The translations under genes were made by a program, and so were the position numbers. From Octopus bimaculoides (Eukaryota), in the NCBI RefSeq assembly GCF_001194135.2, contig NC_068983.1, positions 70,179,273 to 70,243,272 of the forward strand: 64,000 nt of DNA. Direction: 5' to 3'. How positions within the stretch are numbered: the stretch's first letter is position 1; every line of letters begins with the position of its first letter. Below are positions 20,441 to 59,129 of this stretch, one piece after another. Under the pieces are notes generated by a model, which searched no databases, was not told the DNA's origin, and saw only the letters and a list, made by a program, of their open reading frames with translations.

Positions 20441-21860
20441 GTCTAATGCATGACTTCTGAAGGCAGTCTTTCAGTATAAGTGTGTGCATGTGTGTGTGTG
20501 TGTGTGCATGTGTGTGTGTGTGATAGGTGTGATTCTATGTATATTGCTAGCAGAGGAATTGCTGCTATTTCCAGCTCACAGGTGTACCATTGACAAGGTC
20601 ATGGAAGGCCAAAATCATGTGATCTAGTAGCCCCAGTGGCAGCAATGGTGATTGATTATATCCCACTAGCAATGTAGACAAGAGTGCTTATATGCACCAC
20701 AAATCCATGGTAACTATCACAATATTCTGTGTTCTAACACAACACCACCTTTTATGTGGTGATAAATATTATCTTTTGTTAATGTTACTGCTTCTGTCAA
20801 AATTATGTGCGTGTGTGTGTGTGGGGGGGGGGTGCAGGCNNNNNNNNNNTGTGCGTGTGTGTGTGTGGGGGGGGGGTGCAGGCATGTGGTTTAGTGGTTA
20901 GGGTGTTGTATCCATAATTGTAAGACTGGTTTCGATTCCTGGACCAGGTGACGTGTTGTATTCATGAGCAAAAATGTTCAATTTCTTGTTGCTCCAGTTC
21001 ACTCAGATTGGCAAAAATGAATAATCTTGTGATGGATAAGAGTCATGTCTAGGGTGGAGGAAATATGCATGCCATAAGATGTAAGAAACTGACCTTATGA
21101 GTCTATGACTTGAGAAGGGCCCTTTGATCTTTTACTTCACTTATATACATATATACACATTTATATACATATATACATTTATATACATATATATATACAT
21201 TTATATACATGTATATATAATATATAATATAATGAAATTATTGTATACAGTGCTGCATATATATGTATATATATGTGTGTGTATATGAAAGTATAAGTGA
21301 GTAATGTTATATACAGCTTATAGCATAAATTAAAAAATGCTGAGAGAAGGTTGAGAAGAAAAGTACAAATGAACTTGAAATTTGTTATTAGAGAAATATT
21401 CTTTTGTACTTTTCACATACCAACCAAATGGAACAGACATTTTGATATCAACAGTAAATTTTTGGTTTTGTTTGTATGGGTGTATTATCATATTTGTCTA
21501 TATACATATTTTCTTAGAACTCATATCAGTGTTTTTTTTGGTCTAAAAAAGAATATTTTAGGCTACAAAAAAGGAAATATCTTGCTTCTTCATAAAGCTA
21601 GTTTTGTTGGGTAACATGCTTTAGAAGTGTATAGATATTGTTGAATGGAGAAGTCAAGAAATTTCGTCATAAATCAAGTGTTTTAGTAAGTCACCATTTT
21701 GTGTAATGATGTATATAATATAATTTTTAAAAAAATATAACTAAATGCTTCATAAATTTTTATACCACTTACTCATCAAAACTTCCTGGATTTCTTGAAA
21801 TTTTAAAATCTATAAATTACCATGATGCTAAACAGAATTTTTGCTTTTGTTATTTTTCAG

Positions 21861-21911: not shown

Positions 21912-24477
21912 GTATGCATCTTATTTCTTTCTTTACAGTAAAGTCATTTAAGATATATTTATTGAACTAGATTTTTTCATGTACACTAATAAGAATGAGT
22001 ATAAAAGCTATAACTTTTCAAGTAAATGATATAGCTAATGAAAAGTTTAAGAACCAGTGATTTAAAAAAAAAATAACTTCACCATTCAAATTGATAACTT
22101 TTGTCTGTGTATAGTCTTGACTTCTAGATATAAAAGAAGATTTGGATTCCTAGATATGAAAACAGTTTTCCACAAAGAAGCTTTTGAATTTGTGAAAATA
22201 TCAGCTACTTGTCGGGACTTAGATTTTGGTTTGCTCTATTCAAAGAGAATGAATGTCTTCTTTTCATGATAAAATTCTAGCTATGCTGAGGCTATGGAAT
22301 TTTTAAGGTAGCTTACTGCTTAGTGATACTGTGTGTAATCTAATGTAGATAATTCTTGCATCTGGGAAGGATTCATATGGATTGTGAACACAATAAATTT
22401 CTTTCAGATAAATAACATTAGTAGATAATTAATTTCTGTATGTAAGTGAATATATATATTTATAACTACATATGCACATATTGCTGGCTCCAATCCAACT
22501 TCATATAAAATATCCAGCTTCACTTAAGTCTTTCCATGTTGTTCTATTCACTTTGTATTTCCTTTTCATTCTTTCTCAACTTTCAACATTTCAAGCTGAA
22601 TATCAGATATCATTCTCAAAATACTCTGGAGAATTCTATGCACAAACCTTCCTCATTCCAGCTTGCTCATAGCCAACATCTGTAAACTGATGTCTTCGGT
22701 ATCTGATCAGTATCCTGTATGTTAACAGCTTGTATTCCATTAGAATTTATTGCTAATTATTATTAAATAGGAAGCTGGGTTGTATCTCTTAAGATAATAT
22801 TTCTACAATCATATCAATAGATCTCGCTTAAAAAGCAAAACTCCATTTTTGTCATTAAGGCATCTATAGATTGATGGATGATGTATTACAATTATTGGCA
22901 GAAACAGAAGAGTACCAGGAAAAATAAATACCTTGCAGTATTTAGTTGCATTCCTTTTGTGTCTGGGTTCAAATTCTATATCAGAATTGATTTTACCTAT
23001 CATCCTTTCAATGCTAATAAAATAAGTACTGTACTAGTGATAAAATGAGGTTGGTTCCAGTCAGGTATACTCTTCACTACACATACTGGCTTTGTGCCAA
23101 AGTTTGAAATAATCAAGGCATCATTTTAATAGCTCTATTTCTTCAGATACTATGTAGAATTTTCCACCAGTTACAAACCCCAGAAAATCTATCACTGGTG
23201 AAGGTCACCATAAAAATGACTCCTATTAAACCATTATTTATTTAATTGTTACAGGTGGTGTTTAGCCCATGATTATCTGTTTATTTTTATATATCTAGAC
23301 CAACATTTTTTAATATGTACTTCAGTTTTATAAGAGATGAGGGTCTGATTTGAGGGAAATTTGGTTGCTATTTCTCCCAGAGTGAGATAGTCATAGAAAT
23401 TTTATCATTAACTTATACATTTCCATCACTCACGAATGTGGTCCTGAGATACTTAAACATCTCCACTTTTCTCAGTGATGTTCCACTAACATGTAAAGTA
23501 TACTGGGAAGATTATTGAGAGGACCAATGTCTCAGTGTTTGCAAAACTATTAGGTATGATGCCAACTACGTATGTAGAGGTGGGAGTGGAGGTACTCCTT
23601 CTCCAACTGTCAGATTGCGTTCTGGAGTAGATCCCACAAGATGGGAAGGTTTGCTTCCTATAGAAAATACAAATTACTTGATCAACAAAGTTTATTAATC
23701 TATAAAAAAAAACACACTTTGTCCCATATCAAGATTAGCCTGAAAATTTCGTTAAGATGACATATTCTTTACAGCTCCAGCTCAAAAGCAACAAATGTTG
23801 CTTATTATGTGATGATAATTGAGTCTGTAGATAAAAGAAATGGAAAAACAAAGAGGTTACTGGGTGCATATTATGTAACTTTATTTGGTCCTTTTTCTTC
23901 TTTCCCATTCTCTTTCTCCCCCTTCCCCTAAGAGCTTTTAACTGCACACATAATTTTTCCTAAGTAATAGACATCCCACTTTTTTTGTGCACTATCCACC
24001 CCTCATTGATGCCAGTTAAAAGTTTATCAGATTAGAATTTCTTGTTGCCACATCACAAATTTCAATACACAGCTAATGAAATGAAACCACACTACAATCT
24101 ATCTCACTAAGGTAGTCAGTGAGTAGGGCATGCCATTGGCTCTTTACCAACTCTACTTTCTACTCTCCTTTTTCAGTTCTTGAAATGTACATCTCTCTCT
24201 CTTTTTCTTTTTTGCATTATGTATTAAAGCAGAAAATTTTCAACTGAATGGCAGCATGTATCTAATGAAAAGGGACACTGGATCGTTATGAAATATTCAT
24301 AATGTTGCATAATATGCAATTGGTGACCTCTTTGAAACAGCTATAGTACTTGACTACTTTTTCCATTCCTTATATCTAAATATAAATACACACACACACA
24401 CATATGTATATGCATATATATGTGTGTGTGTGTGTGTGTATGAAGAAAAGTATATATATATCCTCCTCCTCCTCCTC

Positions 24478-26140
24478 ATCATCATCATCATTTAACGTCC
24501 GTTGTCCATGCTGACATGAGTTGGACGGTTTGACCAGGGCTGGCAAGCTGGAAGGCTGCACCAGACTCCAGNNNNNNNNNNTGACCAGGGCTGGCAAGCT
24601 GGAAGGCTGCACCAGACTCCAGTCTGATTTGGCATGGTTCCTATGGCTGGATGCCCTTCTTAATACCAACCACTCAGAGAGTGTAATGGTCGCTTTTACA
24701 TGCCACAAGCACAAGTGCCATTTGCGTGATATCAGTATCTGCCACAACTGATTTTACTTGCACAACATGATGCCAAAGGTCTTGGTCATTCGTCATTGCC
24801 TCCATGAGGTCGAACACTCAAAAGCTTTTTACATGCCACTGGCATTGGCCACTTTGCCTTAGTAAGGCCAAACACTTGAAAGGTGCTTTTTACGTGTCAC
24901 TGGCACAGGTGCCAGTTATGTGACACCAGCATCAGCCATGACTACGATTTCAGTTGGTTTGACAGGTCTTCTCAAGAACAGTGTATCACCAAAGGTCTCA
25001 GTTATTAGTCAATGCCTCTGTGAGGCCCAAAGTTCAAAAATCATGCTTCACCACCTCGTCCCATGTCTTCCTGGGTCTATCTCTACCAGAGGTTCCTTCC
25101 ACAGTTTGAGATCGGTACTTCTTTACACAGCTGTCCTCATCCATACACATCACATGACCATACTAGCACAGCTGTCTCTCTTGCACACCACATCTGATGT
25201 CTCTTATGCCTAACTTTTCTCTCAAGATGCTTACACTCTGTTGAACATACACACTAACATTGCACATTTAGTGAAGCATACTGGCTTCATTTCTTTTAAG
25301 CATATGCATGTTCTCATCTGTCACAGCCCATGTTTCACTATCATGTAGCATAGCTGTTCACACACAGACTTTATGCAATCTACCTTTCATTCTGAGGGAG
25401 AGGCCTTTTCTTGCTAGCAGAGGTAGGAGCTCTCTGAACTTTGCCCAGCCTATTCTTATTCTCACATCTATGCTCTCAGTGCATCCACCTCCACTACTAA
25501 CTTGGTCACCTAGGTAATGGAAGCAATCTACTATATCTAGCTTAACCCCTGGCAGTTGATGGAGTCTATTTTCTGAACATTTTCGATATTTATTGTACTT
25601 GTGCATCTTCCACACACAAGAGCTATTTTCCCTGTTAACCTTCCTCAGATATTGCTGCACCTCTTATGTGTCCATAGCTTACACCAGATACATCTTATGG
25701 CGTTTCTATGTATGCCTTTTCTACAGATCGAGCAGGTTCATCTACCTGAAAGGATTTGTGATTTATCTGCCTTCCTACTTACTAAAATTTTGGGTTTTAC
25801 TAGGTTAACTCTAAGGCCCTTAGTTCCATATCTGAAACTTCTCTAGTTCTGGTAGTGATTCAGTTACAAGAGCAAGGTCATCAGCATAGAGGCGCTCCGA
25901 GGGGGCAGCCTGTCTTGAATTTTTCTGTTATTGCCTGGAGGACCATGATGAACAAGATGAAGCTGAGGACTGATCCTTGGTGAACACCTACTTGTACCCT
26001 GAATTCTTCACTGTACTTGTTGCCTACCCTTACCTTTCTGGTAGCATCCCTGTACATGGCTTGTACAGCTCCCACCAACCACTAACCTATCCCTAGTTTC
26101 TGCATTGAAAACTAGGGATAGACGAATGCTTGGTGAGAGC
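24478..26140 (-). mobile_element. RTE-clade LINE 3' fragment (RT core to (GAT)n tail)
   Basis: FRVQVGVHQGSVLS, RLYADDLAL (~25870-25890), FHYLGDQVSSGGGC...RIRIGWAKFRELLPLL, 3' UTR with CTGGATGCCCTTC motif and ATC-repeat tail. Confidence 0.85.
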
Positions 26141-31230: not shown

Positions 31231-33907
31231 GTGATGGTGTGTGTGTGTGTGTGTGTTGATGGGATGGCTATCATCTGTCAAGAGGAAGCAATTATCATCA
31301 TATCTACACACACACACACACACAAACATACATACACACACATGTATATATACACATACTGTATTTTAATGTGTATGAGGAACCATTTTTTTGTCTAAAA
31401 TTAGGTTAAAAAATATATGGGAGTTTCTAATGCATGGATAGTATTATAATCCCTTACAAAACTTTTTTACCAAACTTTAAGCCCCCCCCCCCAAAAAAAA
31501 AATTAGGGTGTTCCTTATACATGTTAAAATACAGTATATATGTATATATATATATATGTATACACCTTTATGTTGATACTTATATATTTTGCAGAACAGA
31601 TATGCTCATATATTGGAATTTTATGATGTTTGATAGAGATCCGTATCATAGCGAGAGAAATGACATCATTTTTAAAACATTTCTTTTTGAGGAGGTTGAG
31701 ATATTTTATATTTCTTTTTTTTTTTTTATATATATATATTTGGCAGTTTTGAGTAGGCAGCAAAAGTTTGCCAGATATTATCCTTAAATTCTTTAATGCT
31801 ATAAGTTGTTGTTATTCTCTTTTATACCAAGATTAACCTGACTGGGCAGAACTATAATTTAAGGACTTCCAGATATGGTGTATATATCTTTAAATAATCC
31901 AACATATTTAATTTTTTTTCTTTTTTGCATTAGATTGTGTGCATTGTTTATTTTTATAGAGATTTAAGTTGATATTTCTTACAGGTTGAACAACCATGTA
32001 GGGTTTCTTTTTCTCATTGAATCTGCCCTTCTTTAAGTTTGACACATTAGTCTTATATTCTTAAGATCTAAATAGCAAGAGAAAAGAATTCAGAATAAAT
32101 ATTTAAAGAAATATATTAAATAAATTTCATTTCAAAATTCTAGTGTTGATCGCATCATCCTCATCCTCATCCTCATCATCATCATCACCAACATCATCAT
32201 CACCAACATCATTATCATCATCATTGTCAATAACAACAGCAGCAACTACAACATCAGCATCATCATCATCATTGTTTTACATGTTTTCCTTTGCCAGCAT
32301 GAGTTGGGTAGGTTTTTTGCAGTAGTGTTTTACAGAAATATGCCCTTCTTGCTGCTAAATCTTTTAGTCTCCTCTTATGGCATTCAGGGACACAGTGCAC
32401 CTATTCCAAACATAACAGGATATACATGATGAGATTCTAGAACTTTTCGTGCTGTTACTAGGCAAATTAATAGCAATACATTTATTGCTACTTTGTTAAA
32501 CACAGTATTTCAAACAATTCAATTTAATCTCTGTTTGTCATCAAGTGATTTATAGAAGTAGTGTTGGTAAAGTCATTAAAATGTTACATAAAATGCCTTG
32601 CAGTGTTTGTGCTGGGTTTCGAAACTCCGAGTTCAAATCCTCCCATGTCGTCTTTTTTATCATCCCTGTGGTTAATAAATAAAATACCAATTAAGTGCTG
32701 GGGGTTAAGATTTCCTCTCTCTCTTCTTTCTCTCCTACTCACTCCCTCTTTCAGCTTTCAATCTCCCTTCCACATTTTTCTTCCCTCTCCCTCCTGCTCT
32801 CCTCTCCCTCCTGCTCTCCTCTCCCTCCTGCTCTCCTCCCCTCCTGCTCTCCTCTCCCTCCTACTCTCCTCTCCTTCCTGCTCTCCTCTCCCTNNNNNNN
32901 NNNNNNNNNNNNNNNNNNNNNNNNNNNNNNNNNNNNNNNNNNNNNNNNNNNNNNNNNNNNNNNNNNNNNNNNNGGTTAAGATTTCCTCTCTCTCTTCTTT
33001 CTCTCCTACTCACTCCCTCTTTCAGCTTTCAATCTCCCTTCCACATTTTTCTTCCCTCTCCCTCCTGCTCTCCTCTCCCTCCTGCTCTCCTTCCTCCCAT
33101 ATCTCCCCTTCCTTCCTTTTCTCCTTCCTTCTTCTCACTAAATTCCTTCTCTGTTTGTCTGTCTGTCTCTCTCTCTCTCTCTACCCAATTCCTTCTCTGT
33201 CTGTCTCTCTCCCTCTCTCTCTCCCTCTCTCTCCCCCCCTCTCTCTCTCCCTCCCTCTCTCTCTCTCAGACTCATTTACATGGTGAGGTCAAGAGCTTAA
33301 AAGAGCCAGTGTATAGTGGCACCAACTTAGAATCCAGTCCGAGTGTCAAGTTCAGACCAAAATTATTGCCATAAATAAACTTGAATGCCACTTATCATTT
33401 TAAGAGTGTTGTCCTTTGTATACTATAATCCAGTTCTCCATCAGTTAAATGGTTTATGTTTCTGGTATTGGTTTGTTGTTGCTGTTTAGCTCCAGATTCA
33501 CTCGGGTTGAACAAACTGTGACCAACACAATGCATTCTTTTTGTATCTAAAACTACAATGTCTTCTTTTTCTTCTTGGAGATGGTAAGGTGTGATTTGAA
33601 GAAATTTGGTTGCTATTTCTAGTTCTTTGAGCAACTGTGAAGTAGTTCCCTTGTTGTCTCTAAATGTGGTATAGTGTATTAAGAGTATTGAAAACTATGT
33701 GCAATAATAGTTTATGAGTTCAACCCCAACTGGGTTACATGTACATATACATATATATCATTTAATGGCAAATTCAAAACCTGTTTTAGACTTTCTGTCT
33801 ATCTGCCTGTCTCTGTCTGTCTGTCTCTGTCTGTCTGTCTCTGTCTGTCTGTCTCTGCCTGTCTGTCTCTGTCTGTCTGTCTCTGCCTGTCTGTCTCTGT
33901 CTGTCTT

Positions 33908-33948
<41 letters not shown>

Positions 33949-35625
33949 CTCTCTTTCTCTGTCTGTCTGTATATTATTTAAGTTAATTTTTGGAAGTTCA
34001 AGACATTTAAAATGAATTTTAAAAGTATATTAGAAGTTTCTAAATTTTACCAGAGCAAATTATGCATTTGTAATTATGTGCTGTTGTTTGTTATTTATTC
34101 ATTAAATACTGGGTTAAGTGTTTGTTAGAAATTAAATTATTTCAAAATAATAATGTTTTTCTTCTGTTATGTAAATGCTTTATATTAAATCAGTATGATT
34201 ACACTATTGATCTCCTGGGACAAAGAACTTTTGATTGATTTTTAAACCATTATTAATATTCAAAACGTTTTGTGTATTTAATTTCTTATTGCATCTCTAC
34301 CAAGGAAGATGGTGTTGGTGATGGTAGGAGGGGTAATATTTCAAGATCCTAAATTTATTACTTGTTATAAAAGGAAAGAATATCTGTTCAATATGACATA
34401 TGGAAGTCAATTGTTTGGTGTTTCTGAAATTGTAATAATTAATATATATCAATATTTTATATCTGCTTGCCACATGCCAAAGTTAATTGTTATTTTAGAT
34501 GTAAATTTCCATGCCATTCTAAACAAAAGGACTGGGTAATTAGGCTAAGAAGGACATAATGAAATAGAAAATGTACTCTTTCACCTATTGGGTTTAGGTA
34601 CTGTATTGGTATGGGCTGTGGTTTGAGCATCAGGCTCACAGTCATGAGATTGTGCGTTTGATTCCTGGACCAGGCTGTGTGTTGTGTTCTCCAGCAAGAC
34701 ACTTTATTTTATGTTATTCTAATTCACTCAGCTGTAGAAATGAGTTGTGGTGTCACTGGTGCCAAGATGTATTGGACTTTGCTTTTCCCTTGGATAACGT
34801 TGGTGGCATGGAGAGGGGAGGCTGGTATGCATTGGTGATTGTTGGCCTTCCATTAACAACCTTACCTGGACTCGTGCCTTGGAGGGTAACTTTCTAGGTG
34901 CAATCCCACGGTCATTCGTGACCGAAGGGGGTCTCTGATATATATATATCTACATATGAACAGTTCTACCCTCTGTCTATATCCATCTTTCATTTTTTCC
35001 TATTGTCCCTGATTCTCCTGTATCAACTCTCTCTTTTATTCACCTTTCTTGGACATGTTACCATGAAAATGCATTCTGTTAATTCTTCACCATATTTACA
35101 TATTTATATCCTTTTTGGTATCACTCCAACCTCCCCCCATTGCCCCATATAAAATGTGAGGAAGCCTTTACATCAGTGAATTTGTATCTGCTCTTCTCAT
35201 AATACTTTATTCTCCCAACTCCTCTCTTAAATTGACCACCCTGTCTCATATCCTCTTTTTCAGTTAAGACTAAAATTTCTTGTGTTCTTCTAGTCAGGTG
35301 ATACAAAAATACACCCAGTACACTTTGTAAAATGGATGGTGTTGGGAAGGGCATCCATAGAAACCACATCAAAACAGAAACATTGGAGCAAGACATGGTT
35401 CTGCAACTCATTGGAGCATGTCAAATCCATGACAGCAATGATGATGATGATGACGATGATGATGATGCTGATGGTGGCAGAGGTATCAGTGGTGGTGTTG
35501 ATGACGATGACGACGACAATGACCGGCTTGATATAAGGCTGGTGAGAGCAACACAAAACCCTCACCTCTTAAGTTACTTTTATATCTTCAAAGAAATACA
35601 TACATATATACATACAATCATATTT

Positions 35626-36060
35626 TGCCATGTTGGCTTGGCGATAACTATTAATTTCCAATACTGCTGCTGTAGTCTCCTTTAGAGAGACTTAGAAATA
35701 TTAATAACTCTATTTCTGAAAACCAGTGGATAGATTCCACTGAAATTAGATAAATAAGCTTCGAACAGATAGTCAGCAGCGCCGCCTGGCTGGAGCTTGG
35801 CTGCTCTGCATTGACAAGGGGCAACACCCTGAAACTAGTCTGCAGATGCCAAACCAGCAAGGGGAAACTGCTGACCTCCCCTGTTCGAAGGTTATAAAGG
35901 ACACAGGTTTCGTGTGTCACATAGCTAGCTAGAGGCGATGGCTTCTTGGAGCTAATTCACGGCAGCTTTCATCCTAATTTTGGGACTGCCATGTTGGCTT
36001 GGCGATAACTATTAATTTCCAATACTGCTGCTGTAGTCTCCTTTAGAGAGACTTAGAAAT
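35626..36060 (+). mobile_element. 361-bp tandem repeat unit carrying a type I hammerhead ribozyme (candidate non-LTR retrozyme), one full unit plus 74 nt of a second before a gap
   Basis: 35626-35699 is repeated identically at 35987-36060 on the same side of the N gap. The unit is CpG-rich, contains many hairpins and a hammerhead core at 35806-35845. Confidence 0.72.
35806..35845 (+). ncRNA. Minimal type I hammerhead ribozyme, U3-A8 core variant
   Basis: CTGCA (stem I) - TTGACAA (core 3-9) - GGGG/CAACA/CCCT (stem II) - GAAAC - TA - GTC (cleavage triplet, predicted cut after 35840) - TGCAG (stem I). Stem III is the palindrome ACTAGT. Confidence 0.75.
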
Positions 36061-36107
36061 NNNNNNNNNNNNNNNNNNNNNNNNNNNNNNNNNNAACCAT
36101 ATTTATA

Positions 36108-36316
36108 CAGTTCTATATTTAAGAGATGAGGAATTATGCACATTGTTTACATTATTTACATTTGACAGATATTTGTCCTCATCTTGTTTGTTGTTAACAC
36201 AATGTTTCAGCTGATATACCCTCCAGCCTCATGGCATATAGCGCAGTGGTTAAGAGTGCAGGCTGCTAACCCCAAGATTCTGAGTTCAATTCCCGGCAGT
36301 AACCTGAATAATGATG

Positions 36317-36356
<40 letters not shown>

Positions 36357-36511
36357 TAATAACATCGAAAAATACCTTAGGAATGAGAACCCAGGTTCGA
36401 AATTTCCCCAAGACACCTGATGAAGGCTGGAGGGTATATCAGCTGAAATGTTGTGTTAACAACAAACAAGATGATGACAAATATCTGTCTAATGTAAATA
36501 ATATAAATAAT
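36108..36511 (+). mobile_element. Composite SINE-like element: inverted arm + tRNA-like head + (TAA)n + Penelope-type hammerhead tail
   Basis: A-box TAGCGCAGTGG (~36239) and B-box GAGTTCAATTCC (~36282), (TAA)n 36308-36362, hammerhead 36412-36457. About 36146-36232 is the reverse complement of about 36420-36510. Possible flanking direct repeat CATATTTATA (36098-36107 / 36512-36521). Confidence 0.65.
36412..36457 (+). ncRNA. Penelope-type minimal hammerhead motif (CpG-decayed copy)
   Basis: GACAC-CTGATGA-A-GGCTGG-AGGGTATA-TCAGCT-GAAATGTT-GTGTT. Other copies read CAGCCGAAACATT, so the inferred consensus is ...CAGCC GAAACGTT GTGT with palindromic ACGT stem III. Confidence 0.65.
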
Positions 36512-36924
36512 CATATTTATATCTGTACGTATAAATATATATGTATCATCATCGTCCTTTAATGTCTGCTTTCCATGCTGGCATGGGTTGGATGGTTTGA
36601 CAGGAACTGGCTAGCTGGGGAGCTGCCGAGGTTCCATTTGTCTGTTTTGTTTAATTTTTCCTACTGGATACTCTTCCTAACATTAGCCACTTCACAGAGT
36701 GTACTGGTTGCATTTTATGTGACACCAGCATTGGTGCTTTTACATGGCATAGACGTGGGCACCTCTACATATCACTGGCATGGATGCTTTTACATTGCGC
36801 TGGCATGGGTACTTGTTTATGGCACCAGCATGAATGCTTTTTATGTGAGACTGGCACCATATATTTATACATATATGTATTCAAATATGAATTACACACA
36901 AGCACGCACGCACACACACTCACT

Positions 36925-36962
<38 letters not shown>

Positions 36963-37006
36963 CACACACACACACGTATACGGTCAAACTCACACTACAG
37001 AGAATT

Positions 37007-37171
37007 ATGAGGAATTATGTACATTATTTACATTGGATGGATATTTGTCCTCATCTTGTTTGTTGTTAACACAATGTTTCGGCTGATATACCCTCCAGCC
37101 TTCATGTCATATGGCATAGTGGTTAAGAGTGCAGGCTACTAACCCCAAGTTTCTGAGTTCAATTCCAGGCA
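37007..37171 (+). mobile_element. Second, truncated copy of the inverted-arm + tRNA-head composite
   Basis: Same arm (...ACAATGTTTCGGCTGATATACCCTCCAGCCTTCAT) joined to the same head (ATGGCATAGTGGTTAAGAGTGCAGGCTACTAACCCCAAG...GAGTTCAATTCCAGGC). Confidence 0.65.
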
Positions 37172-37279
37172 TGTAAAACTCAATGACAAGATGATTAGTG
37201 GCACAGTAATTGGAAATTATGCAGGTACTGTACCAAAGAGTTGCTTAAAGGAATAATGAGGAGAAATCAGAAAGGGTGA

Positions 37280-38760
37280 AGTAGTTAGATATTATTTATT
37301 GTGATTCAGATACTGGGGAAAACTAACGAAGGCCTGGAATATGGTGGAGGTATCAACAAGACTTGTATTATATAATAAAATTGACAAAAAATTATGGTGA
37401 ACTGGCTGTGAAGAGTAGAAAATCTGTTTTGGACAGACTCCTTCTTCAGGGAAAAGTTGACAAGAGAAATTAAGGAAAGACAGCCAGAGTTTTACATGCT
37501 CTAAGTTAGAAAAACTGGCTGCAGTTGATAAAGAAACAGGAGCTTCATCAATAGACAGAAAGTAGTTGGAGAGAGAAAGTGGGTAAGAGAGATAGAGGGA
37601 AAGAGAAATGTATTGAAGAGAGAAGTGGGTGAAGGCAAGTGAGAGGTGAAAGGAAAAGATGAGGTGAGAGGGGAGTTGAGGGATTAGAAAGGGTATAATG
37701 AAATAAGATGAGGTGTAGGAGTAGAATGGAAAACATTTAAGCCTGTCAGTGACATGGTACCAGATTTGAATATGAAACCTTGTTACCTCCATTTCCTTGA
37801 ATATATGGATCCATAATGGTTGGAAATGCTGCACACTGGTGAGTGAGTGATGGATTGGATTGTTGTGTGAAAGTAGGTCACAACAGGTTGGCCTGGCATA
37901 TATATCAGTATGCTTTGAATGTGCTTCTGAAGGTAATCAATAAGATGTCAGCCTGTTTGCCTTAATATACTGCAGAGTTTGTATATGATACACTATGTAA
38001 GATTGGATGATGTGCAACGGAAGCCCTGAGTAATGCAATATTATGACTAGGGCCCACTGACTGTGGTAGTGTTGTTGATGTAGGAGCAGTTGTTGCATCA
38101 TTGGTGAGTGCATTTAAAAGTACCTAATTGTGTGGAGCTTGGTGCTGTGAAGCTTTTTAGTTGGTGGTTGCTTAGGTTCTTATCTTGTATGGAAGTGAGG
38201 AGAGGTAGTACTGGAAAGTAAACTTCAAAAGTTATAGATGTGTTTATCCTGCAAGAGAAGCATAGATGGGTGGAAGATGACAGATAATAGAATACAGTCT
38301 GCAGGTGCATGTAAAATGAGTATGAGTGCAGTGGCATGATTGATGTCCTGGACTTGGTGGAGTGCAGAGTCCTCAACTGATCGAGTATAACCTTGATTCA
38401 GGAAGAATAGTCATATTCTTTTGCTTTGGGATTTGATATTCAAATTAGTGCTGCAGAAGAATTGAGGGTGAAGGAATTCAGAGAATGGCAGGGCATATTT
38501 AGTGTTTGAAGAGTAGTGGACATAGGAGTGGGAGTCAGTAAGCTTGTAGTGGGTGGAGGTAGACAGGTGGATATTATTTATAGTGATAGAGATATTGGGG
38601 AAAACTAACGAAGGCATGGAATATGGTAGAGGTAAATTCCAAGGCAAAGTGAAGGGAATTAATGAAAAAGATAAAATTATTGAGCTGTTTGGGGTGGTAA
38701 CACTGACCAATCATCAATATAATGACCATACACTGGGCCCATCCCAGGGCTGGTCTACCA
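37280..38760 (-). mobile_element. Decayed Penelope-like element (RT C-terminus + GIY-YIG endonuclease region + 3' UTR + partial tandem copy)
   Basis: Minus-strand peptides LNNFIFFINSLHFALEFT, LSTSTHYKLTDSHSYVHYSS, LPFSEFL, then FKCTHQ*CNNCSYI and FRCTSSNLT*CIIYKLC (GIY-YIG context). Degenerate hammerhead CCTGAAGAAGGAGTCTGTCCAAAAC at 37426-37450. RT segment repeated at ~37300-37350 vs ~38580-38630. Confidence 0.75.
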
Positions 38761-43347: not shown

Positions 43348-44768
43348 CTAGCTGGACCCGTGAAAAAATTCATGGATAATTTAAATATTGTCCAATGAAT
43401 AGTTATCATATACAATATAATATATATAATATAATATAATAAATTATTGTGTGAAAGTATATATTAAATACATCCATTACAGCACTTCTCTATATACAGT
43501 GTTTCTAGTGTAGGTGATTCCCCTTCTGCGACCATGAGTGGATTCATTTTGAGGTGTCACTTTAACCCTCACACTGTTCATCGCCCTTACTCTTGAAAAA
43601 GCTACGTGAAGCTGGAAATGAGTGAAGCATGGCTGTGGCAAGTGTATGCCAACTCTATCAAATGTTTGCCCCTGTGTTTTATTGATTGTCATAGAATAAG
43701 ACAGATGAACTGGGAACTGGGTTCGATGAGAATGAATGGAATGTTTGCATTGCTTGGAGTAAGTTTGATTCTTGGAATCAGTACTCTCATGTGAGAATGA
43801 GATCCACTTATAATTGGTGCTTCGATCCTATGCTCATGGAGCTGAAGTACTTCCAAGGGAATTCCGTTGCATAGAGCTTATGTTATAGAGAGGTTTGTAA
43901 GAAGCATAATAATTGCTCCAACTTTTAAGTTAAGGCGATGGGGAAGCATTCCATAAGATGTAAGAGAGTTTATAAACTCCATGGGATAATTCTGGGTTTC
44001 TTCATTATCAGAAATTACTGAGTCAGTGCTTAGATGTGTCTTAGTTTCAGTGGGCAATCTATTTAGAATTTCTTTATTAACTGCTAAGCAGTCGAATTTT
44101 TAGGGGATAAGATCACTCTAGTTTTCATTTCTTCTATTGTACAGTTGTCAAATATATCAGATACCAAAGAATTGTTACTTATGCAGACCTCAGGAATATC
44201 AATAGTATCTTCTGTGAGGTTAACAAGAGAGCTTTGACAAAATCCACTTCCAAGTTGTAGTAGCCACCTCGAAAAATCTTGTTCATTTGCATTTGTTCTC
44301 ATGTTTTGCGTAAGTTGCATTTGATGAAAATTATCCCACATAGTGGAGCATTTGAGGCAAGCATCAAGTACAGCTGCAGGAGGAACTCTGGGAATAACTT
44401 GAAGAACTTGTCTAAAATCTCCTTCTAGTACGATAATTTTCCCACCAAATATACTATTACTATTCATATCTCTTAAACAATTATCTATAGCTTTCATAGC
44501 ATAAACTGGTATCAGTGAAGCTTCATCAATAATGAAGACTTTTACTCACCTAAGTATATTTCCTTGATCAGAATTTGGTGGAACATTGCACACACTTGTC
44601 TCACTCAAAGGAGCTGAAAGCTTGAATATATTGTGAAAAGTTTTACCACCTTTCAAGAGTGTTGCAGCAATACCAATCCAGAAGCCAAGGGAAATAATTC
44701 AAATTTAATCCTGACTTATCTCCCTTAGTGTGACAAACACAAACGGTACAAGCGTATTAATATATAGA
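43348..44768 (-). mobile_element. Internally deleted Helitron with both termini and a decayed PIF1-like helicase
   Basis: Minus-strand 5' end A|TCTATATATT at 44768. 3' end: hairpin CCATGAA-TTTT-TTCACGG, 6 nt, CTAG|T at 43348. Helicase motifs IAATLLKGGKT, FIIDEAS, FGGKIIVLEGDFRQVL, LTQNMR, MTINKTQGQT, QLHVAFSRV, YTRNTVYREVL*. Rep domain absent. Confidence 0.9.
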
Positions 44769-47672
44769 TTACTTTTTTGCATAGAAAGAGGAAGTCTCTT
44801 CTACAGTGGATAGAGCATCTTTCTGAGCTGCCTGAATAGTTCATGGACTACATTGCATGAGTGTCCCTATTTCTAGTTACTCTTTTATATCAAGCATATT
44901 TGGCATTATGGTGCTCTGTCAGTCTGCCAGAGATTCCATTGTGTCTTTTGTGTACCTATTGCTTGAATTAAGTATGCATTATTATCAATAAAAAGAGCAA
45001 AATCAGAAATCAACAAATTTGTGAAAACTATTCACCCATGAAATTACTAAAACTTTAGGTGCAAAATGTTAGAAAATATGAAAAACAAAATTTTCTAGTT
45101 TGTAAGCTGTTTTGGATTTGGAAAAAGAATATTATAATTTACTTTCCTTTAACAATCAGTATTTCATTCTGACCAATTTTTCATAAAACAGCAACCTTGT
45201 AGAAATTCTATTTTTTATTTACTATGGTGATGTCACAGTACTCTATACATTTACTTTTGTTTTCTTTCAAATGTTCACACCATTTTACAACTATTCCAAT
45301 CAGTCAATTGAATTGGATGTCTTTTAGCATTTTATTGTGTGTACCTATATACTTGAATGTAATTCTTATCTAAAATTCTTTACATGACAAAATTTCAACA
45401 TTCTGGACTGTATTCTCCACACAAAAAAAAAAAAAGCCATTCATCTAACTGGTAAACTTTTACTAACCAGCTACAAACACTGATGTGCACTTTTTTTCAG
45501 ACTATCCTTTAACTATCCTTTCCAATAAAGAATACACTGATTGAAGAAAATGATGAATTATTTACACCTGGTATGCCTTTGATCATCAGTCTTCTCAGTC
45601 AGATCCAACTTGAAGTTATAACAACAACCGGCATTATTCCTACTACATTGGTTGCTGTACCTCTGTACTAAAAGGCTGTTTAACATTTACCTGAGTTCAA
45701 TTAATTCACTTGTCTCCCATCCTTTTTCCAAAGTTATGATATCTCATCTTCTTTAATTGACACACTTCGCCCTGTCTGCAGTCCTCTCGAACCACCTCCC
45801 AGCTCACTTGCGGAGCATTAAGCTGGAAATCCAGTAACATCAGCTTCACTAGTTTGCAAAATCTATGAGAAACATATTTTTTGGTAGTAAAATCTTGTGA
45901 CTTAAATTAAAACATCGGATTGAAGTTTCACCTCTATTCTATTAAAGCTGATTGATATATGTAAATAAACTATTGGAGTTCTAGAGCAAATGTGTTTTTA
46001 CTATAATTATTACTGGTTATTTAGAGTTAGTTTGATAATAATCTCTCTTAGATTACAGTGAGAAAGGTGTTTATTCTCAGGTCAGACTTAGGATTAAAGG
46101 CATTCCAGTCATGATGCTCCTGGCTATGGTTATTCATACAAAGTGACCTGGAGTTATTCTATCCATTTTGTCTATTTTCTAAGACAGAATGATTTGACTG
46201 CTTTTTTCTAGTATCTTGAGTGACCACAAAGAAATTCTTTTTCTCTGATAGTTCATAGTTTTATTTCAAATCCAGCATTTTTCTCACATAGAGCCTACCA
46301 AATGAATGTGGTATTTGATTTGATCTGCTTTCGTTTACAAAAGAATTAACAGTTAAAAAATCTTTTTTTAAAACCTTCTCTAAGTTTCTTAAAACAGTAT
46401 TTATTAAATTGTTTCAGATGATTTCTAGCATTTAACTGATTTATCTGGAAACTCAATTGTATTAAAGAAGGCATAGATGTTACAACTATTTTTTTCTTAC
46501 ATCATATTTCGAAGTACAATTAATCAATGTAAAGTATGCAGTGTACTTCACATGAATGGATGGTTTCTCTGTCATGCTATTAAATCTTTCTAATAAAACC
46601 TTTGGACAGTTGCTAACTTATACTTCTCATCTCTAAAATTTTATCTAAAGTATTTTTTTATTTATTGTATACTGACCACTTCTTATCTCTTTGTGATTCA
46701 ATACCTTCCATTGCTATGGGCCTTCTTAATTCTTCATCTCATCTGTAAAATGTTACTTTTATCTCACAGACATGAAAAGAATAGTAGTTTTAGAAGACTT
46801 TGCTCTAGACACTGTCATTTTATAGATACATATTACATTTACCATTGATTTCTTTCCTTCATTTACATGTATTTATTCTCTATCATGCAGTTAACTGTTT
46901 CACAACAAAATATATCAATATCCTATTTCCTAGAACTTTCTCAATGCAACAAAAAATTTCATTCACCTGGTCTTTTATACTACAAATAAATGAATGCCTA
47001 CTTGCAAGCTCTCACACTTCTGTTGCTTTTCACTGACTCTTTCTAAATCAGATCTGAGTATATCTGCCTCTGTTAATATCTCTTTGTAACTTTCATATCA
47101 GTTCTCTATTATGAGCATATTTGTATAGTTAGTATTTTTTATTTTTCCTAAAAAGCATCTCAAATATTTTTTTTTTTATAATGTACATTCTTTGCTTCAA
47201 AATATATCACATTACCAACAATCAAATATAAATTCAGTGGCAATCTTCTTTTTACTTATGAGAATATGGAAAGATTCTGGATTTATCTATTCAAGCATAA
47301 CACCACCTGCAATGAAAGCTGTTAGTCTATTAATTTGAAAATTTGGATACAATGTCTTAGCGAAAATATTTTACATATATCATTTTTTGAAAATATTATC
47401 TATTAATGAACAAAATGATGATATTTCAGAAAATACTTGTCATGTTTCATGTATCAGTTGAGAAGTACTCTGGCAGTTAAGTCTCACTGCAATCATATCT
47501 CTTCTGTTTTTAATCTATAGCATTTGGTTGAAAGTTTGGGAAAGTTTTGAAGTTGTTTTCGTTTGGAAGCGTTAAATAATCTGTGACGGCCAAGTTGGAG
47601 GAATTGTGCTGCAGTAGTAGTTGTATAGCAGAGTTTGATGATATCATTCCAAATTATGGCCTATATTATCTG

Positions 47673-48947
47673 ATGGAAGAAGAAAATAGCGATAAAACGA
47701 ACCCTTATCGAAGTTCTCGTGATTCAGATATGTATGACAGGCTTGATTCTAGGGAAGGTGCCAAGCACATGTCACAGCCTGACTATAGTGTCAACCCTCA
47801 GACATTATTGGAAAACTATGTGGAGAAGAAAGTTCGTTTTGCTGGAGTGATTCCAGATGTGCAGATTGATGATGTCACAAACAGAACAGATGTATTACGC
47901 ATTATTGATGAAGGCAAGAAACAAGGCAGAGTCCATCATCGGACAACAGATAAGGAGCATGGCACTTGCTTCACACTCAATGTACACAACATAAAGCTGA
48001 CCTGCAAAGATGAGTTGCTACTTCGTATCTGCATCCATGAGATAGCAGCAGTGTGTTACATCAAAGACGACAACGACTACATTCTACCGATTAAATACGG
48101 AGTTCCAGAGAAATGTAACTTGGCTGTACTTTATGTTGACGACAAGATGCAAGCTGAAGAAATTTGTGCATTGGTCAACCAATGTTTCCAGCTTGTTTAT
48201 GCCGATGTAGCCATTCAGTTCATCAACATCAACTNNNNNNNNNNTTTCCAGCTTGTTTATGCCGATGTAGCCATTCAGTTCATCAACATCAACTTAAATG
48301 GTGCTTTCGGAACATCAGTGCCTTCTTCAAACACACAGAGTGACTCCACCACTATTAACAATGCCCAAGACACAGCACTGAAACCATCGTATATAAAAAC
48401 AAAAGACCAGAACCTTACCAAGAACAACACTTCATCCTACAGCCGTTCCCCAAAAGCATCCAAGCACACAATTAGTGGAACCACCGAAAGTGAGATTAGT
48501 CTGACTGGTGGTGATTATTCTGAGGTCATTCAAGATTATCTGAAGAAGCTGCACAAATGCCTCACCAAAACAGAACTGTGTCAGTTTGCTGTTCTGCTCA
48601 CTGCCCGACAGAAAGGTGCAACCACAGGAGAATTTTGCAAAGAAGTTTTCAATTTGTTCGGACAAGAAAGGAAACATATGATGACTGGCATGGGTCCTTT
48701 CATAGAAGCAAAAGACTATCATGTGTTTGAAGAATTCCTGTCTAAAAATTCTATGGCGCTTCCAGCAAATGGCCATGGTATCATCTCCAGCTTCCACAGC
48801 AATTCTCAGCTCTGCAAAGACAACAGCATTACAACTCACTCAATAAACAGCGGAGATATGGATGAATTTGATCGAATGATGGACTGCATCTCAGATCAGA
48901 TCGATAACATGGAGAACAGTGTCGATGTGGACAGCTTTGTGTCATGA
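47673..48947 (+). CDS. CCM2: CCM2/malcavernin-like scaffold protein (PTB domain + C-terminal harmonin-homology domain), single-exon ORF nested in the RGS intron
   Basis: First ATG after in-frame TAA (47577) gives MEEENS..., like the MEEE start of CCM2. PTB motifs LLENYVEKKVRFAG, NRTDVLRIID, LLRICIHEIAAVCYIKDD, AEEICALVNQCFQLVY. HHD motif EVIQDYLKKLHKCLTKTELCQFAVLL...GMGPFIEAKDYHVFEEFL. C-terminal DEFDRMMDCISDQI. A 50-nt duplication around a 10-N gap adds 60 artefactual nt; true length about 404 aa. Confidence 0.92.
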   Translation: MEEENSDKTNPYRSSRDSDMYDRLDSREGAKHMSQPDYSVNPQTLLENYVEKKVRFAGVIPDVQIDDVTNRTDVLRIIDEGKKQGRVHHRTTDKEHGTCFTLNVHNIKLTCKDELLLRICIHEIAAVCYIKDDNDYILPIKYGVPEKCNLAVLYVDDKMQAEEICALVNQCFQLVYADVAIQFININXXXXFQLVYADVAIQFININLNGAFGTSVPSSNTQSDSTTINNAQDTALKPSYIKTKDQNLTKNNTSSYSRSPKASKHTISGTTESEISLTGGDYSEVIQDYLKKLHKCLTKTELCQFAVLLTARQKGATTGEFCKEVFNLFGQERKHMMTGMGPFIEAKDYHVFEEFLSKNSMALPANGHGIISSFHSNSQLCKDNSITTHSINSGDMDEFDRMMDCISDQIDNMENSVDVDSFVS

Positions 48948-52580: not shown

Positions 52581-52614
52581 NNNNNNNNNNGTTGGGGGGA
52601 CAAACACAGACACA

Positions 52615-56128: not shown

Positions 56129-57313
56129 TGTGTGTGTATGTGTCCTTGTGTTTGCATTTGTCTCCCCTCACCACTGCTTGTTAGTTAGTTTCTTTACTTT
56201 CCTGTTTCTTAGCAGTTTGGCAACAAAATTTGATAGAATAAGTACTGAGGTGGATTTCTCCAACTAAACCCTTTAAGGCTGTGCCTGAGCATGGCTGCAG
56301 TCCTATGACAGAAACAATTAAAATATAAACTGCCTATTTTAAAGGCATAGTATTATGGTTAATTACACTATCCCCTGTGTCCTTCCTTTACTTAATGATG
56401 TTAATGTATAGCTTGAACAGACTATGTAATACTGATGAGATCTAATAGATCAAAACATGTATCTATCTTATCTGCAAACAAAGATTATATTTTCTTTTAG
56501 TAACCTTCCCTTTTTTGTGTTTGTGTCACCATGACTAGCCACTAGGGTATTGTTTTCTTTCTGTGACTAAAAGTGATATTTCAATTATAAATATTTTTAA
56601 ATGTGACATTCACCTCTTAAATTAGTTTTTTTATCTCATGCTTTGCACTATTTTGAATTATTTCCCTTAGTTCAGAATATTTTAGTATGCAAATTAAAAA
56701 CAAAAATTTTTTTAATTACATGGGCCAAAAATTATCTACAACCATCCCCCCCCCCATTATTGTAATTGTGAAATACTCTTTCAGCTAATCAGGTAAGCTT
56801 AATTAAGTTATATTATGCTAATGAGAGCTAATAGTCTGCAACACATCCACAGCTATTCCGTGCTTGCAAAAGAGAAAAAGAAAAATGGATTTTTCTCTCA
56901 GCATGTAAATTAACTTTGGGAGATTCAATATTGGCCCAAGAGCTTGAAACAGACTGAACTTGCTCTAAAGGTATCCAAGGACTAAGTGTTGTGGTTAAAT
57001 CTGGTGACAGATTTACCACCCAAGTAGGATTTGGTGTGATTCGAACTCAGAACACAAACAGCTGGAACCATTCCATCAGTCCACTGCCCTAGACTGGTAT
57101 TTTAAATATTCTATCATTTACTTGCTTCAGACATTAGGCTACAGCCATTCTGGGACACTGCATTGAAGGGTTTTAATCAAACAAATCAAACCCAGGATTT
57201 ATTTTTCTTTTAAGCCTAGTACTCATTCTATTGGTCTCTTTTGCTGGACCACTAAGTTATGAGGATGCGAACATACAAGTGGTAGTAGTGAGAGCAAACA
57301 CAGACATACACAT

Positions 57314-57398: not shown

Positions 57399-58101
57399 CA
57401 AGATTCTGTCATTTACCATCTATCATATCCTGAGGCTATAGTAAAGGACACTTGTCCGAGGTGCTATGCAGTGGGACTGAACCTCAAAATAAAAAAGCTA
57501 CAGGGCATTATATTATGTCCAATGCTTTAACAACTCCATTACTTGCTTTGCAGTCAATGCTGCAATGTGATATATATGTATAGTAAAGGACTATATGGTA
57601 GATGTGGTGGTGTACCAGAAAAAATGCCTCATAATATTGACCTCTGTCCTTATATTAAGTCTAACTGTCTGAAATTGTTTATTGTTAATACAATTATAAT
57701 TTTTTCAGTCTATTAATCTTGTCTTTAGAGATGAAATAGTTGAAAAAAAAAAAATTCCATCAACAGGGATGTAAATATTAATCATAAATATTAAAGCATT
57801 TTTAATCTTTAAAGTATGAAAAATTATAATTGCATGTTCCTGTGTGTTCTGATATGAGAATCCCACCAGGGTTGACTGAGCCTTTCATCCTCTCCCAGGT
57901 CAATAAAATAGCTAGCAGTCAAGTTATGGTGTCAATTTAATTGACGATGGCCTCTTTTAAAATGTGTGACCTTATGCTTAATGCTAGAAATCAATATGAT
58001 GCATATTAATATTAAAACTATAAACAAATAAACATGTGACAATATCATAATATATACTGTGATATTACAGCATATAAATAATGATATGAAGATACACAGC
58101 G

Positions 58102-58149
<48 letters not shown>

Positions 58150-59129
58150 TATCATCATCATCATCATCATTATCATCATCATTACTTAGTGTCTGCTTTC
58201 CTTGCTGGCATGGGTTAGACAGTTTGACTGAAACTGGCAAGCTGGAGTGTTGTGCCAGGTTCCAATCTGATTTTGCATAGTTTCTACTACTGGTTGCTCT
58301 TCCTAATGCCAACTGCTCTAAGAGTGTACTGGGTGCTTTTTACATACCACTGGCATGGATGCCGGTTATATGAAACTGGTATTGGCCACAGCTACAATTT
58401 CACTTGGCTTCATGGGTCTTCTCAAGCATGGCATATTGTCAAAGGTCTTAGTCACTTGTCATTGCCTCCATGAGGCCCAACATTCAAAGATCATGCTTCA
58501 GCCCCTTGTCTCATGTCATCCTGTAAAATAATAATGTTAAACTGTTATAAAGCATAAAAATACTGAAGCACATAAAATAACAACATATATTTGTACAAAC
58601 TAACTGAAGAGACCTGGCCCAATTACTTGCATCGGGGTAAACTCCATCAAAAGTACCCAAAGGATGATGAATCAAGTCTACCACCTTCTACATAGTCACT
58701 AGAAATAGCAGTGAAACCTACCTTAGATTACACACCTTGCCATCTTCAAAAGAGAGAGAAAGATTAGATAATATATTACTATGCCCAAGGATGGTTATGG
58801 CTGGAATACTTAGGAATGAGATTACAGGAAAAATAGCATACATTACAACATAGTTTAATGCTAGAATGTAACAATAACATGACTCAGTGAACCACAGACT
58901 TTAAGGTTATAAAGGAGAGTTCAGCTGTGTGAAAACCTTAAGGAAGTAATTCTTTCTGAAGATGGTCATCCAGGATTTTAACACATATGTAGTTTTGTAT
59001 TTTGTTTAGAATATGAGAATAAATGGATGCTTATGAAAGTGAAAGTGGAATTATGAGAATGATTGATGAGATGCCTTGTAATTTCCATTCTGAATCTTAA
59101 CATTTTGAGTTCAAATTTTGCCTCCTATC

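Follow-up and report, generated by a model that had tools for sequence, protein, structure and literature searches.

A candidate non-LTR retrozyme with an unusual hammerhead core in octopus DNA

Introduction

Retrozymes are small retroelements that carry hammerhead ribozymes, and their circular RNAs flood animal transcriptomes. They are known from mussels, corals, and salamanders, and they have been described as widespread in invertebrates including molluscs. The animal elements without long terminal repeats (non-LTR retrozymes) are head-to-tail repeats of ~150-450 bp, occurring as dimers up to large multimers. A stretch of 64,000 nt of Octopus bimaculoides DNA (contig NC_068983.1, positions 70,179,273 to 70,243,272; hereafter the window) contains a 361-bp unit that is followed by the start of a second one, and an initial annotation of the window placed a type I hammerhead ribozyme in this unit. 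Is this locus a retrozyme, and could it give a 361-nt circular RNA, as was proposed then? We conclude that the locus is probably a genomic insertion of a non-LTR retrozyme of the non-autonomous kind. The size of 361 bp, the GC content of 45%, the lack of coding sequence, the self-pairing, a candidate target-site duplication (TSD) longer than 4 bp, and a score of 26.9 bits with a retrozyme covariance model fit this proposal; the single hammerhead, the 1.2 units, and the non-consensus core weigh against it.

In our literature search we found no paper describing a cephalopod retrozyme. A flat statement that there is no cephalopod example would nevertheless be too strong, as 235 Rfam Hammerhead_1 loci are listed in the giant-squid genome paper (PMC6962438) and retrozymes are known from mussels.

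The repeat unit and the assembly gap

The beginning of the unit (35626-35699) is repeated at 35987-36060 with 74/74 nt identical and a spacing of 361, exactly as initially annotated. The units are joined head to tail by GGGAC/TGCCATG at 35986/35987, and the second copy directly abuts a gap of 34 N. About 1.2 units have been assembled so far, and the insertion would have ~1.3 units if the gap is truly 34 nt. The program TRF gave no entry for the 361-bp repeat because it has fewer than two copies.

The repeat touches the gap, and its duplicated part measures no more than 74 nt. The locus might thus be a gap-closing artefact, or a hairpin-rich local duplication with a hammerhead-like string in it, and neither a ribozyme nor a mobile element. 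We consider this very unlikely. Both repeat copies lie on the left of the 34-N gap, unlike the overlap pattern at the 10-N gaps of the window, and the earlier view that this is not the usual contig-overlap artefact was borne out. Moreover, GGGAC/TGCCATG was written by the assembler, and therefore reads that contain the head-to-tail junction must exist. The candidate TSD, described below, also argues against an artefact.

The 10-N gaps (20840-20849, 24572-24581, 48235-48244, and 52581-52590) have the same 30-50 nt on each side and are contig-overlap artefacts.

The unit is non-coding. It has no LTR, primer-binding site (PBS), or polypurine tract (PPT), and its GC content is 45.4%, compared with the retrozyme criterion of <45-50%. 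The longest of its open reading frames (ORFs) has 101 aa and no methionine, and none of them has a Pfam match. The observed/expected ratio of CpG is 0.43 in the unit (8 CpGs, GC 45%), while it is 0.15-0.25 in the flanks and 0.25 in the window; the retention of CpGs that had been noticed earlier is thus true but modest in size. The unit ends have no terminal inverted repeats. This and the head-to-tail junction do not agree with a miniature inverted-repeat transposable element or a foldback transposon, and the lack of coding sequence does not agree with the LTR pair of a coding retroelement.

The hammerhead motif

The motif (Table 1) has three helices around the junction, with helix I open, and the junction forms in or near the minimum free energy (MFE) fold. 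The pair A15.1-U16.1 (A35834-U35839) is canonical, and so is the GUC triplet with C17 at 35840. In the 5' core, positions 4, 5, 6, and 9 are canonical, while U3 and A8 replace C3 and G8 of CUGANGA. The full hammerhead reported at 35806-35845 is thus real in its topology and in the position of C17, but the core is UUGACAA and not CUGANGA, and a G.U wobble stands at 10.1-11.1. The assembled sequence contains a single complete hammerhead. For a minus-strand ribozyme we found no match. The motif is very likely derived from a hammerhead.

In the active fold of hammerheads C3 and G8 form a Watson-Crick pair. Perreault et al. (2011, PMC3088659) reported that this pair covaries to U3-A8 in a number of hammerheads from nature, and that activity in vitro had been shown before for cores of this kind. 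In Schistosoma there are ~1,300 U3-A8 motifs (Cervera & de la Pena, PMC4209133). A non-Watson-Crick 10.1-11.1 pair (U.U) is found in the axolotl HHR_Amex2 family of ~60,000 copies. Since U.U occurs in such an abundant family, the G.U of the octopus motif is not disqualifying. The octopus ribozyme is possibly active despite its U3-A8, G10.1.U11.1 core, as far as the sequence tells.

In canonical metazoan type I hammerheads, helix I has 6 bp, helix II has 4 bp, and helix III has 1-2 bp and a small palindromic loop; ribozymes of this design are thought to cleave efficiently only as dimers, in tandem transcripts (PMC4209133). The octopus motif has the same architecture.

Descriptor and covariance-model searches

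We made a motif descriptor that accepts C3-G8 or U3-A8. It has one match in the window, the site at 35802-35847, where the expectation is 0.11 per 64 kb for both strands and ~6e-4 per 361 bp. This descriptor was loosened after the site had been seen and is not independent, and therefore a covariance model is the fairer test. The model, R1, was built from three retrozyme hammerhead ribozymes (HHRs) with experimental validation, coral Amil224, mussel Mg353, and axolotl Ax353 (Suppl. Table 2, PMC7229834). Axolotl Ax330 was left out of the training since MAFFT misaligned its helix II.

With R1 the octopus motif scored 26.9 bits (roughly E~4e-5) and was the top match in the 64-kb window. The further matches there scored 24.2 bits (another motif, 56423-56470), 12.8 bits, and 12.2 bits. 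As a negative control, 22 kb of O. bimaculoides DNA was searched with the filters off and gave a maximum of 14.2 bits. The 13 canonical HHRs of the metagenome contigs described below scored 18.5-31.5 bits, a range that includes the octopus motif. The octopus motif stands 12-14 bits over the R1 background, with 170 kb of strands searched.

These scores bear on the explanation by chance. A chance string would account for the non-consensus core and the silence of Rfam, it could have been picked up by a descriptor loosened post hoc, and the second, poorer R1 match at 24.2 bits indicates that the E-values may be optimistic. However, R1 was built independently of the octopus sequence, and its margin over the background is large. 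Features that were never searched for also match those of relatives (the length of helix I, the UGC/U loop 1, the extension helix, and CAAC), and the fold of the unit has a z-score of about -7.

The second match, at 56423-56470 (+), scored 24.2 bits with a rough E~2e-4 and reads UAUGUAAUA-CUGAUGA-GAUC-UAAUA-GAUC-AAAA-CAUGUAUC-UAUCUUA. Its CUGAUGA agrees with the consensus and its helix II of 4 bp is perfect, but G12 is A and helix I has only ~3 pairs. The surrounding sequence is unique, AT-rich, and free of repeats. This match could be a solitary hammerhead that has decayed, or it could be due to chance.

Fold of the unit

The linear + strand of the unit folded at -137.6 kcal/mol, while dinucleotide shuffles folded at -98.5 +/- 5.4 kcal/mol (z = -7.2). 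The linear - strand had z = -6.1. As a circular monomer the unit folded at -131.9 kcal/mol (z = -6.7) with 63% of the bases paired. A coral retrozyme clone folded in the same way gave z = -4.4, which is weaker than the octopus unit. The hairpin arms named in the initial annotation are all present and all form in the MFE fold.

Helix I is extended into an imperfect rod with the hammerhead junction at its tip. The 15-nt arm pair at its base (35754-35768 / 35881-35895) is 93% complementary, and CpGs are retained in both rod arms (TTCGAA / TTCGAA). For the rod segment the hammerhead-competent fold has -64.5 kcal/mol and the MFE fold -66.8 kcal/mol. In most metazoan retrozyme circles the HHR is free to fold (PMC7229834), and the small gap of 2.3 kcal/mol fits this. 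When two copies of the motif were given to RNAcofold, the result was a helix-I-swapped dimer, which says nothing on a double hammerhead.

Comparison with animal and plant retrozymes

Among known systems, the non-LTR retrozymes of animals (Cervera & de la Pena 2020, PMC7229834) come closest, especially those of the mussel Mytilus galloprovincialis (clone Mg353). The octopus unit of 361 bp compares with head-to-tail units of 350-390 bp in the mussel, and both hosts are molluscs. Like the animal retrozymes, the octopus locus has a type I hammerhead (in its one complete unit), no coding sequence, low GC content, a highly self-paired predicted RNA in which the ribozyme can fold freely, and a candidate TSD of >4 bp. 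The unit has no similarity to the mussel and coral clones outside the ribozyme motif, as expected for species-specific families. There are also differences. The octopus core has U3-A8 and G10.1.U11.1 instead of C3-G8 and G-C. Helix III of the octopus motif has 2 bp and a 2-nt loop, while that of the mussel is longer (ACGCGCGU). In the octopus the assembly shows just ~1.2 units.

Plant LTR retrozymes share with the octopus element that they are non-autonomous, bounded by hammerheads, and replicate through a circular RNA, which in the octopus would be the likely intermediate. Their other features, namely type III hammerheads in ~350-bp LTRs, a PBS, a PPT, 4-bp TSDs, circles of 600-1000 nt, and a GC content of >55%, are all absent from the octopus locus.

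The ribozyme itself resembles a group of palindromic type I hammerheads with a minimal helix III. This group includes newt and axolotl satellite 2 (HHR_Amex1), hammerheads of Schistosoma, and the metagenome contigs L001-L009 described below. The octopus motif shares with them the 6-bp helix I, the U-R-C / U loop, the extension helix, the 4-bp G-rich helix II, and CAAC in loop 2, and also GAAAC-UAGUC with the palindromic ACUAGU and the GUC triplet. By analogy with newt and axolotl, cleavage in the octopus would be expected to depend on dimers. All members of the group have CUGAUGA and G10.1-C11.1, whereas the octopus has UUGACAA and G.U; loop 2 has 7 nt in the relatives and 5 nt in the octopus. 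The natural U3-A8 variants (PMC3088659, PMC4209133) have the same isosteric swap of C3-G8 as the octopus core. The U3-A8 motifs of Schistosoma are minimal HHRs (min-HHRs) of Penelope-like elements (PLEs) without helix III, while the octopus U3-A8 occurs in the canonical architecture and in a retrozyme-like unit.

Relatives in metagenome contigs

We scanned metagenome contigs with a degenerate pattern that was derived from helices II and III of the octopus motif and accepted either core. The scan gave 9 contigs with 13 motifs, all of which have CUGAUGA and none U3-A8. The contigs L001-L009 are, in this order, the JGI contigs Ga0214172_1021233, Ga0157567_145015, Ga0214197_1007479, Ga0007805_1039445, Ga0180045_101174, Ga0157570_1013657, Ga0118677_10288993, Ga0208618_1015731, and Ga0157566_1117776. 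Several of them contain two motifs 603-634 nt apart, and together they form one diverged tandem-repeat family. Their units have a type I hammerhead of the form CUGAUGA-GGGGGCAAnnACCCC-GAAACUAGUC, no long ORF, and weak structure. This family is retrozyme-like. It shares the ribozyme with the octopus unit and nothing else; its units of 603-634 nt have z = -2.2, compared with 361 nt and z = -7.2 in the octopus.

Since the scan pattern came from the octopus motif, the agreement with the relatives in helices II and III is circular. Outside the scan pattern, the octopus and its relatives have in common the 6-bp helix I, the 3+1 loop 1 (U-A/G-C / U), the extension helix, and CAAC in loop 2. The octopus version of loop 1, UGC/U, is found in L004-L006. 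Across 11 sequences 93.6% of the cells pair, compared with 26-50% in slid controls, and two-sided changes were seen in 5/6 pairs of helix I and 4/5 pairs of the extension. The extension helix of the relatives is CC[C/U] / [A/G]GG, and that of the octopus, TTGGC / GCCAA, differs on both sides.

The insertion and its target site

The ten bases directly 5' of the unit (AATCATATTT) and the first ten bases after the gap (AACCATATTT) match at 9/10 positions at offset 0, and they are a candidate TSD of 10 bp around the unit and the gap. A match as good as this, of a 10-mer with the sequence 469 nt downstream and with <=5 nt of slack, occurs at 0.10% of the window positions and for 0.21% of AT-rich 10-mers. 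Judged from the sequence, the candidate TSD argues for a discrete insertion, and probably so. If it is real, the inserted element spans 35626-36094 and includes the gap. An empty target site would read ...CAATCATATTTATACAG..., with the 10-mer single. The TSDs of animal retrozymes, when present, are >4 bp (PMC7229834).

The left copy lies in a microsatellite-like stretch, which also fits an insertion, as PLEs favour microsatellite targets (PMC8557442). The locus could alternatively be a 5'-truncated partial tandem of an autonomous PLE, with the unit as its pseudo-LTR (pLTR) and the hammerhead as a PLE ribozyme. PLEs insert as partial tandems that form pLTRs with hammerheads (PMC8557442, PMC4209133), they are present in cephalopods, and their ribozymes in Schistosoma show the U3-A8 covariation (PMC4209133). 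Furthermore, a 2026 preprint derives the animal retrozymes from PLE pLTRs. The octopus locus resembles these pLTRs as a partial tandem and a hammerhead-bearing repeat with a microsatellite-like target, and the mobilising enzymes are probably the same. The differences from them make this explanation unlikely. A PLE has an ORF for a telomerase-like reverse transcriptase (RT) and usually a GIY-YIG endonuclease, but no Pfam family and no RT or GIY-YIG signal was found in six frames of 33300-38200, nor an RT among the window ORFs of at least 110 aa. The octopus junction links the end of the unit straight to its start, and thus the unit is the whole element. PLE min-HHRs have no helix III, a helix II of ~6 bp, and an extra base between 9 and 10.1 (PMC4209133). 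The octopus ribozyme has none of these traits. Its architecture is canonical: helix I has 6 bp, helix II has 4 bp, and there is a helix III.

Weighing the retrozyme interpretation

Several observations weigh against the interpretation of the locus as a retrozyme. The ribozyme core is off consensus at three sites (C3>U, G8>A, and C11.1>U), all of them transitions, and the 10.1-11.1 pair is a wobble (G35818.U35830) and not G-C. G8>A and C11.1>U could be CpG decay of an inferred CUGACGA...CCCCGAAA, and the ribozyme could have lost its activity. At 36167-36206, where the next hammerhead would be expected, the sequence is unrelated and does not belong to a unit. The candidate TSD is short, AT-rich, and has one mismatch; it is tentative, with the right end of the element hidden in the gap. 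A search for other copies of the unit in the window (blastn), 22 kb of O. bimaculoides DNA, viral contigs (exact-pattern scan), and metagenome contigs found none. The translated ORFs of the unit (the 101-aa ORF, and the other frames concatenated) retrieved no homologue from 5.8 billion proteins. The calibration of R1 was shortened and its E-values are rough, although the margin of 12-14 bits is independent of calibration. Finally, Rfam cmscan reported no hammerhead, either at gathering thresholds on the whole window or at E<=10 on slices of 561 nt and 81 nt. In a control, however, Rfam at gathering also missed the canonical relatives, which have CUGAUGA and an equally minimal helix III and reached 17.6 bits at best (Hammerhead_3, E-value mode). 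Since Rfam misses canonical relatives too, its silence on the octopus motif is uninformative.

An identity of the unit as a snoRNA, a miRNA, or sucA-II was rejected, as the Rfam matches were far below thresholds.

The transitions in the core could mean that the locus is a fossil, that is, a retrozyme or another hammerhead-bearing repeat whose ribozyme has been mutated to death and gives no circular RNA, with U3-A8 being coincidental. CpG is depleted genome-wide here (observed/expected 0.25) and partly in the unit (0.43). One of the ten TSD positions has diverged, which means that the insertion has some age. A single hammerhead has been assembled, and U3-A8 is found in 0/13 of the close metagenome relatives. 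But a neutral C3>U, which is not a CpG change, would have had to fall exactly on the partner of A8 and restore the pair, and given the 74/74 identity of the repeat copies this has a chance of a few percent. Moreover, all 6/6 pairs of helix I, the 5 extension pairs, and the whole rod are intact, with CpGs in both arms, which is not the appearance of a decayed copy, and U3-A8 cores are natural and active elsewhere. We regard a fossil as rather unlikely, though it is the main alternative. Whether the ribozyme is catalytically competent today has, from its sequence, roughly even odds.

For the retrozyme interpretation, a life cycle can be proposed by analogy with known retrozymes. As in coral, mussel, and axolotl, arrays with at least 2 units would be transcribed into multimers. 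The hammerhead would cut 3' of C35840 (GUC/U), probably best as a double hammerhead formed through the palindromic ACUAGU. The resulting monomers of 361 nt would bear a 5'-OH and a 2',3'-cyclic phosphate and would be circularised by a tRNA ligase of the RtcB type, and the circle junction would join ...GAAACUAGUC to UGCAGAUGCC.... The circles would be reverse-transcribed in trans into tandem cDNA, most likely by PLE enzymes, and this cDNA would integrate at AT-rich microsatellite-like sites and leave a TSD.

The 361-nt circle that had been proposed would come from this very locus only if the gap hides further units. As one hammerhead has been assembled, the release of a unit-length RNA from the locus would require a gap far longer than 34 nt. 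Provided that no further units are hidden there, a daughter insertion is more likely than a master copy that produces circles. An active octopus retrozyme family, which would work on a U3-A8 / G10.1.U11.1 core and make abundant 361-nt circular RNAs, is possible but doubtful.

Implications

If confirmed, this locus would extend retrozymes from bivalves to cephalopods, and it would be a natural test case for U3-A8 together with a 10.1-11.1 wobble in a canonical type I ribozyme. An active family, if there is one, would give cephalopods their first characterised retrozyme, and it would be the first case of U3-A8 fixed in a retrozyme rather than in a PLE ribozyme. The long double-stranded rod of its RNA would then be of added interest, since ADAR editing is exceptionally active in these animals. 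The locus does not alter the present view of how retrozymes work. Annotation based on Rfam misses hammerheads with a minimal helix III, even perfectly canonical ones, and thus counts such as the 235 of the giant squid are likely underestimates.

Table 1. Coordinates of the retrozyme-like locus in the window
Feature	Position	Strand	Remarks
Left copy of candidate TSD, AATCATATTT	35616..35625	.	Directly 5' of the unit, in an AT/AC-rich microsatellite-like stretch
Complete unit, retrozyme-like monomer	35626..35986	+	361 bp, GC 45.4%, 8 CpGs, no protein domain
Imperfect rod, ~142 nt	35754..35895	+	Extension of helix I, hammerhead junction at tip; inverted repeat and fold
Helix I extension, TTGGC / GCCAA	35797-35801 / 35848-35852	+	Beyond the 3+1-nt internal loop 1
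Type I hammerhead motif	35802..35847	+	Descriptor, architecture comparison, covariance model R1
Internal loop 1, UGC / U	35802-35804 / 35847	+	
Helix I, UCUGCA / UGCAGA	35805-35810 / 35841-35846	+	6 bp
5' core, UUGACAA	35811-35817	+	U3 = 35811, A8 = 35816
Helix II, GGGG / CCCU	35818-35821 / 35827-35830	+	4 bp
Loop 2, CAACA	35822-35826	+	
G12 A13 A14, GAA	35831-35833	+	
Helix III, palindrome ACUAGU	35834-35839	+	2 bp and 2-nt loop (A-C-[UA]-G-U)
C17	35840	+	Predicted cleavage 3' of it
Start of second unit	35987..36060	+	74 nt, 100% identical; repeat comparison
Assembly gap, 34 N	36061..36094	.	Within the inserted element if the TSD is real; true length and number of units not given by the assembly
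Right copy of candidate TSD, AACCATATTT	36095..36104	.	First ten bases after the gap

Surroundings of the locus

The unit lies ~11.5 kb upstream of a CCM2-like long exon at 47583-48947 (+), which matches PF16545 (CCM2_C, E = 1e-17). Its identity to O. bimaculoides CCM2 is 96% in protein and ~97% in DNA. A CCM2-anchored comparison with O. bimaculoides DNA found the intergenic sequence unalignable, and the 10-kb flank ended before the region and did not contain the unit. By this comparison alone, the host would be judged an Octopus-like species other than O. bimaculoides. The 10-N gap at 48235 is inside this exon and artificially doubles the peptide FQLVYADVAIQFININ in the 454-aa ORF. A fragment of a PIF1-like helicase at 44084-44497 (-) (PF05970, E = 2e-18) is probably a Helitron remnant.

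Just right of the retrozyme-like insertion there is an inverted repeat of 88 nt (36142-36229 / 36424-36511, 93% complementary). It encloses a tRNA-like segment (~36234-36305) that looks like a short interspersed nuclear element (SINE), and an (AAT)n tract at 36307-36362. The whole of 36142-36511 resembles a foldback or palindromic element that has received a SINE. A common repeat ending in (GAT)n / (ATC)n, which translates as poly-Asp, is found at 35300-35530, 36545-36600, 24376-24747, and 57932-58312, and one copy lies ~100 nt left of the unit. This repeat is presumably an abundant octopus SINE.

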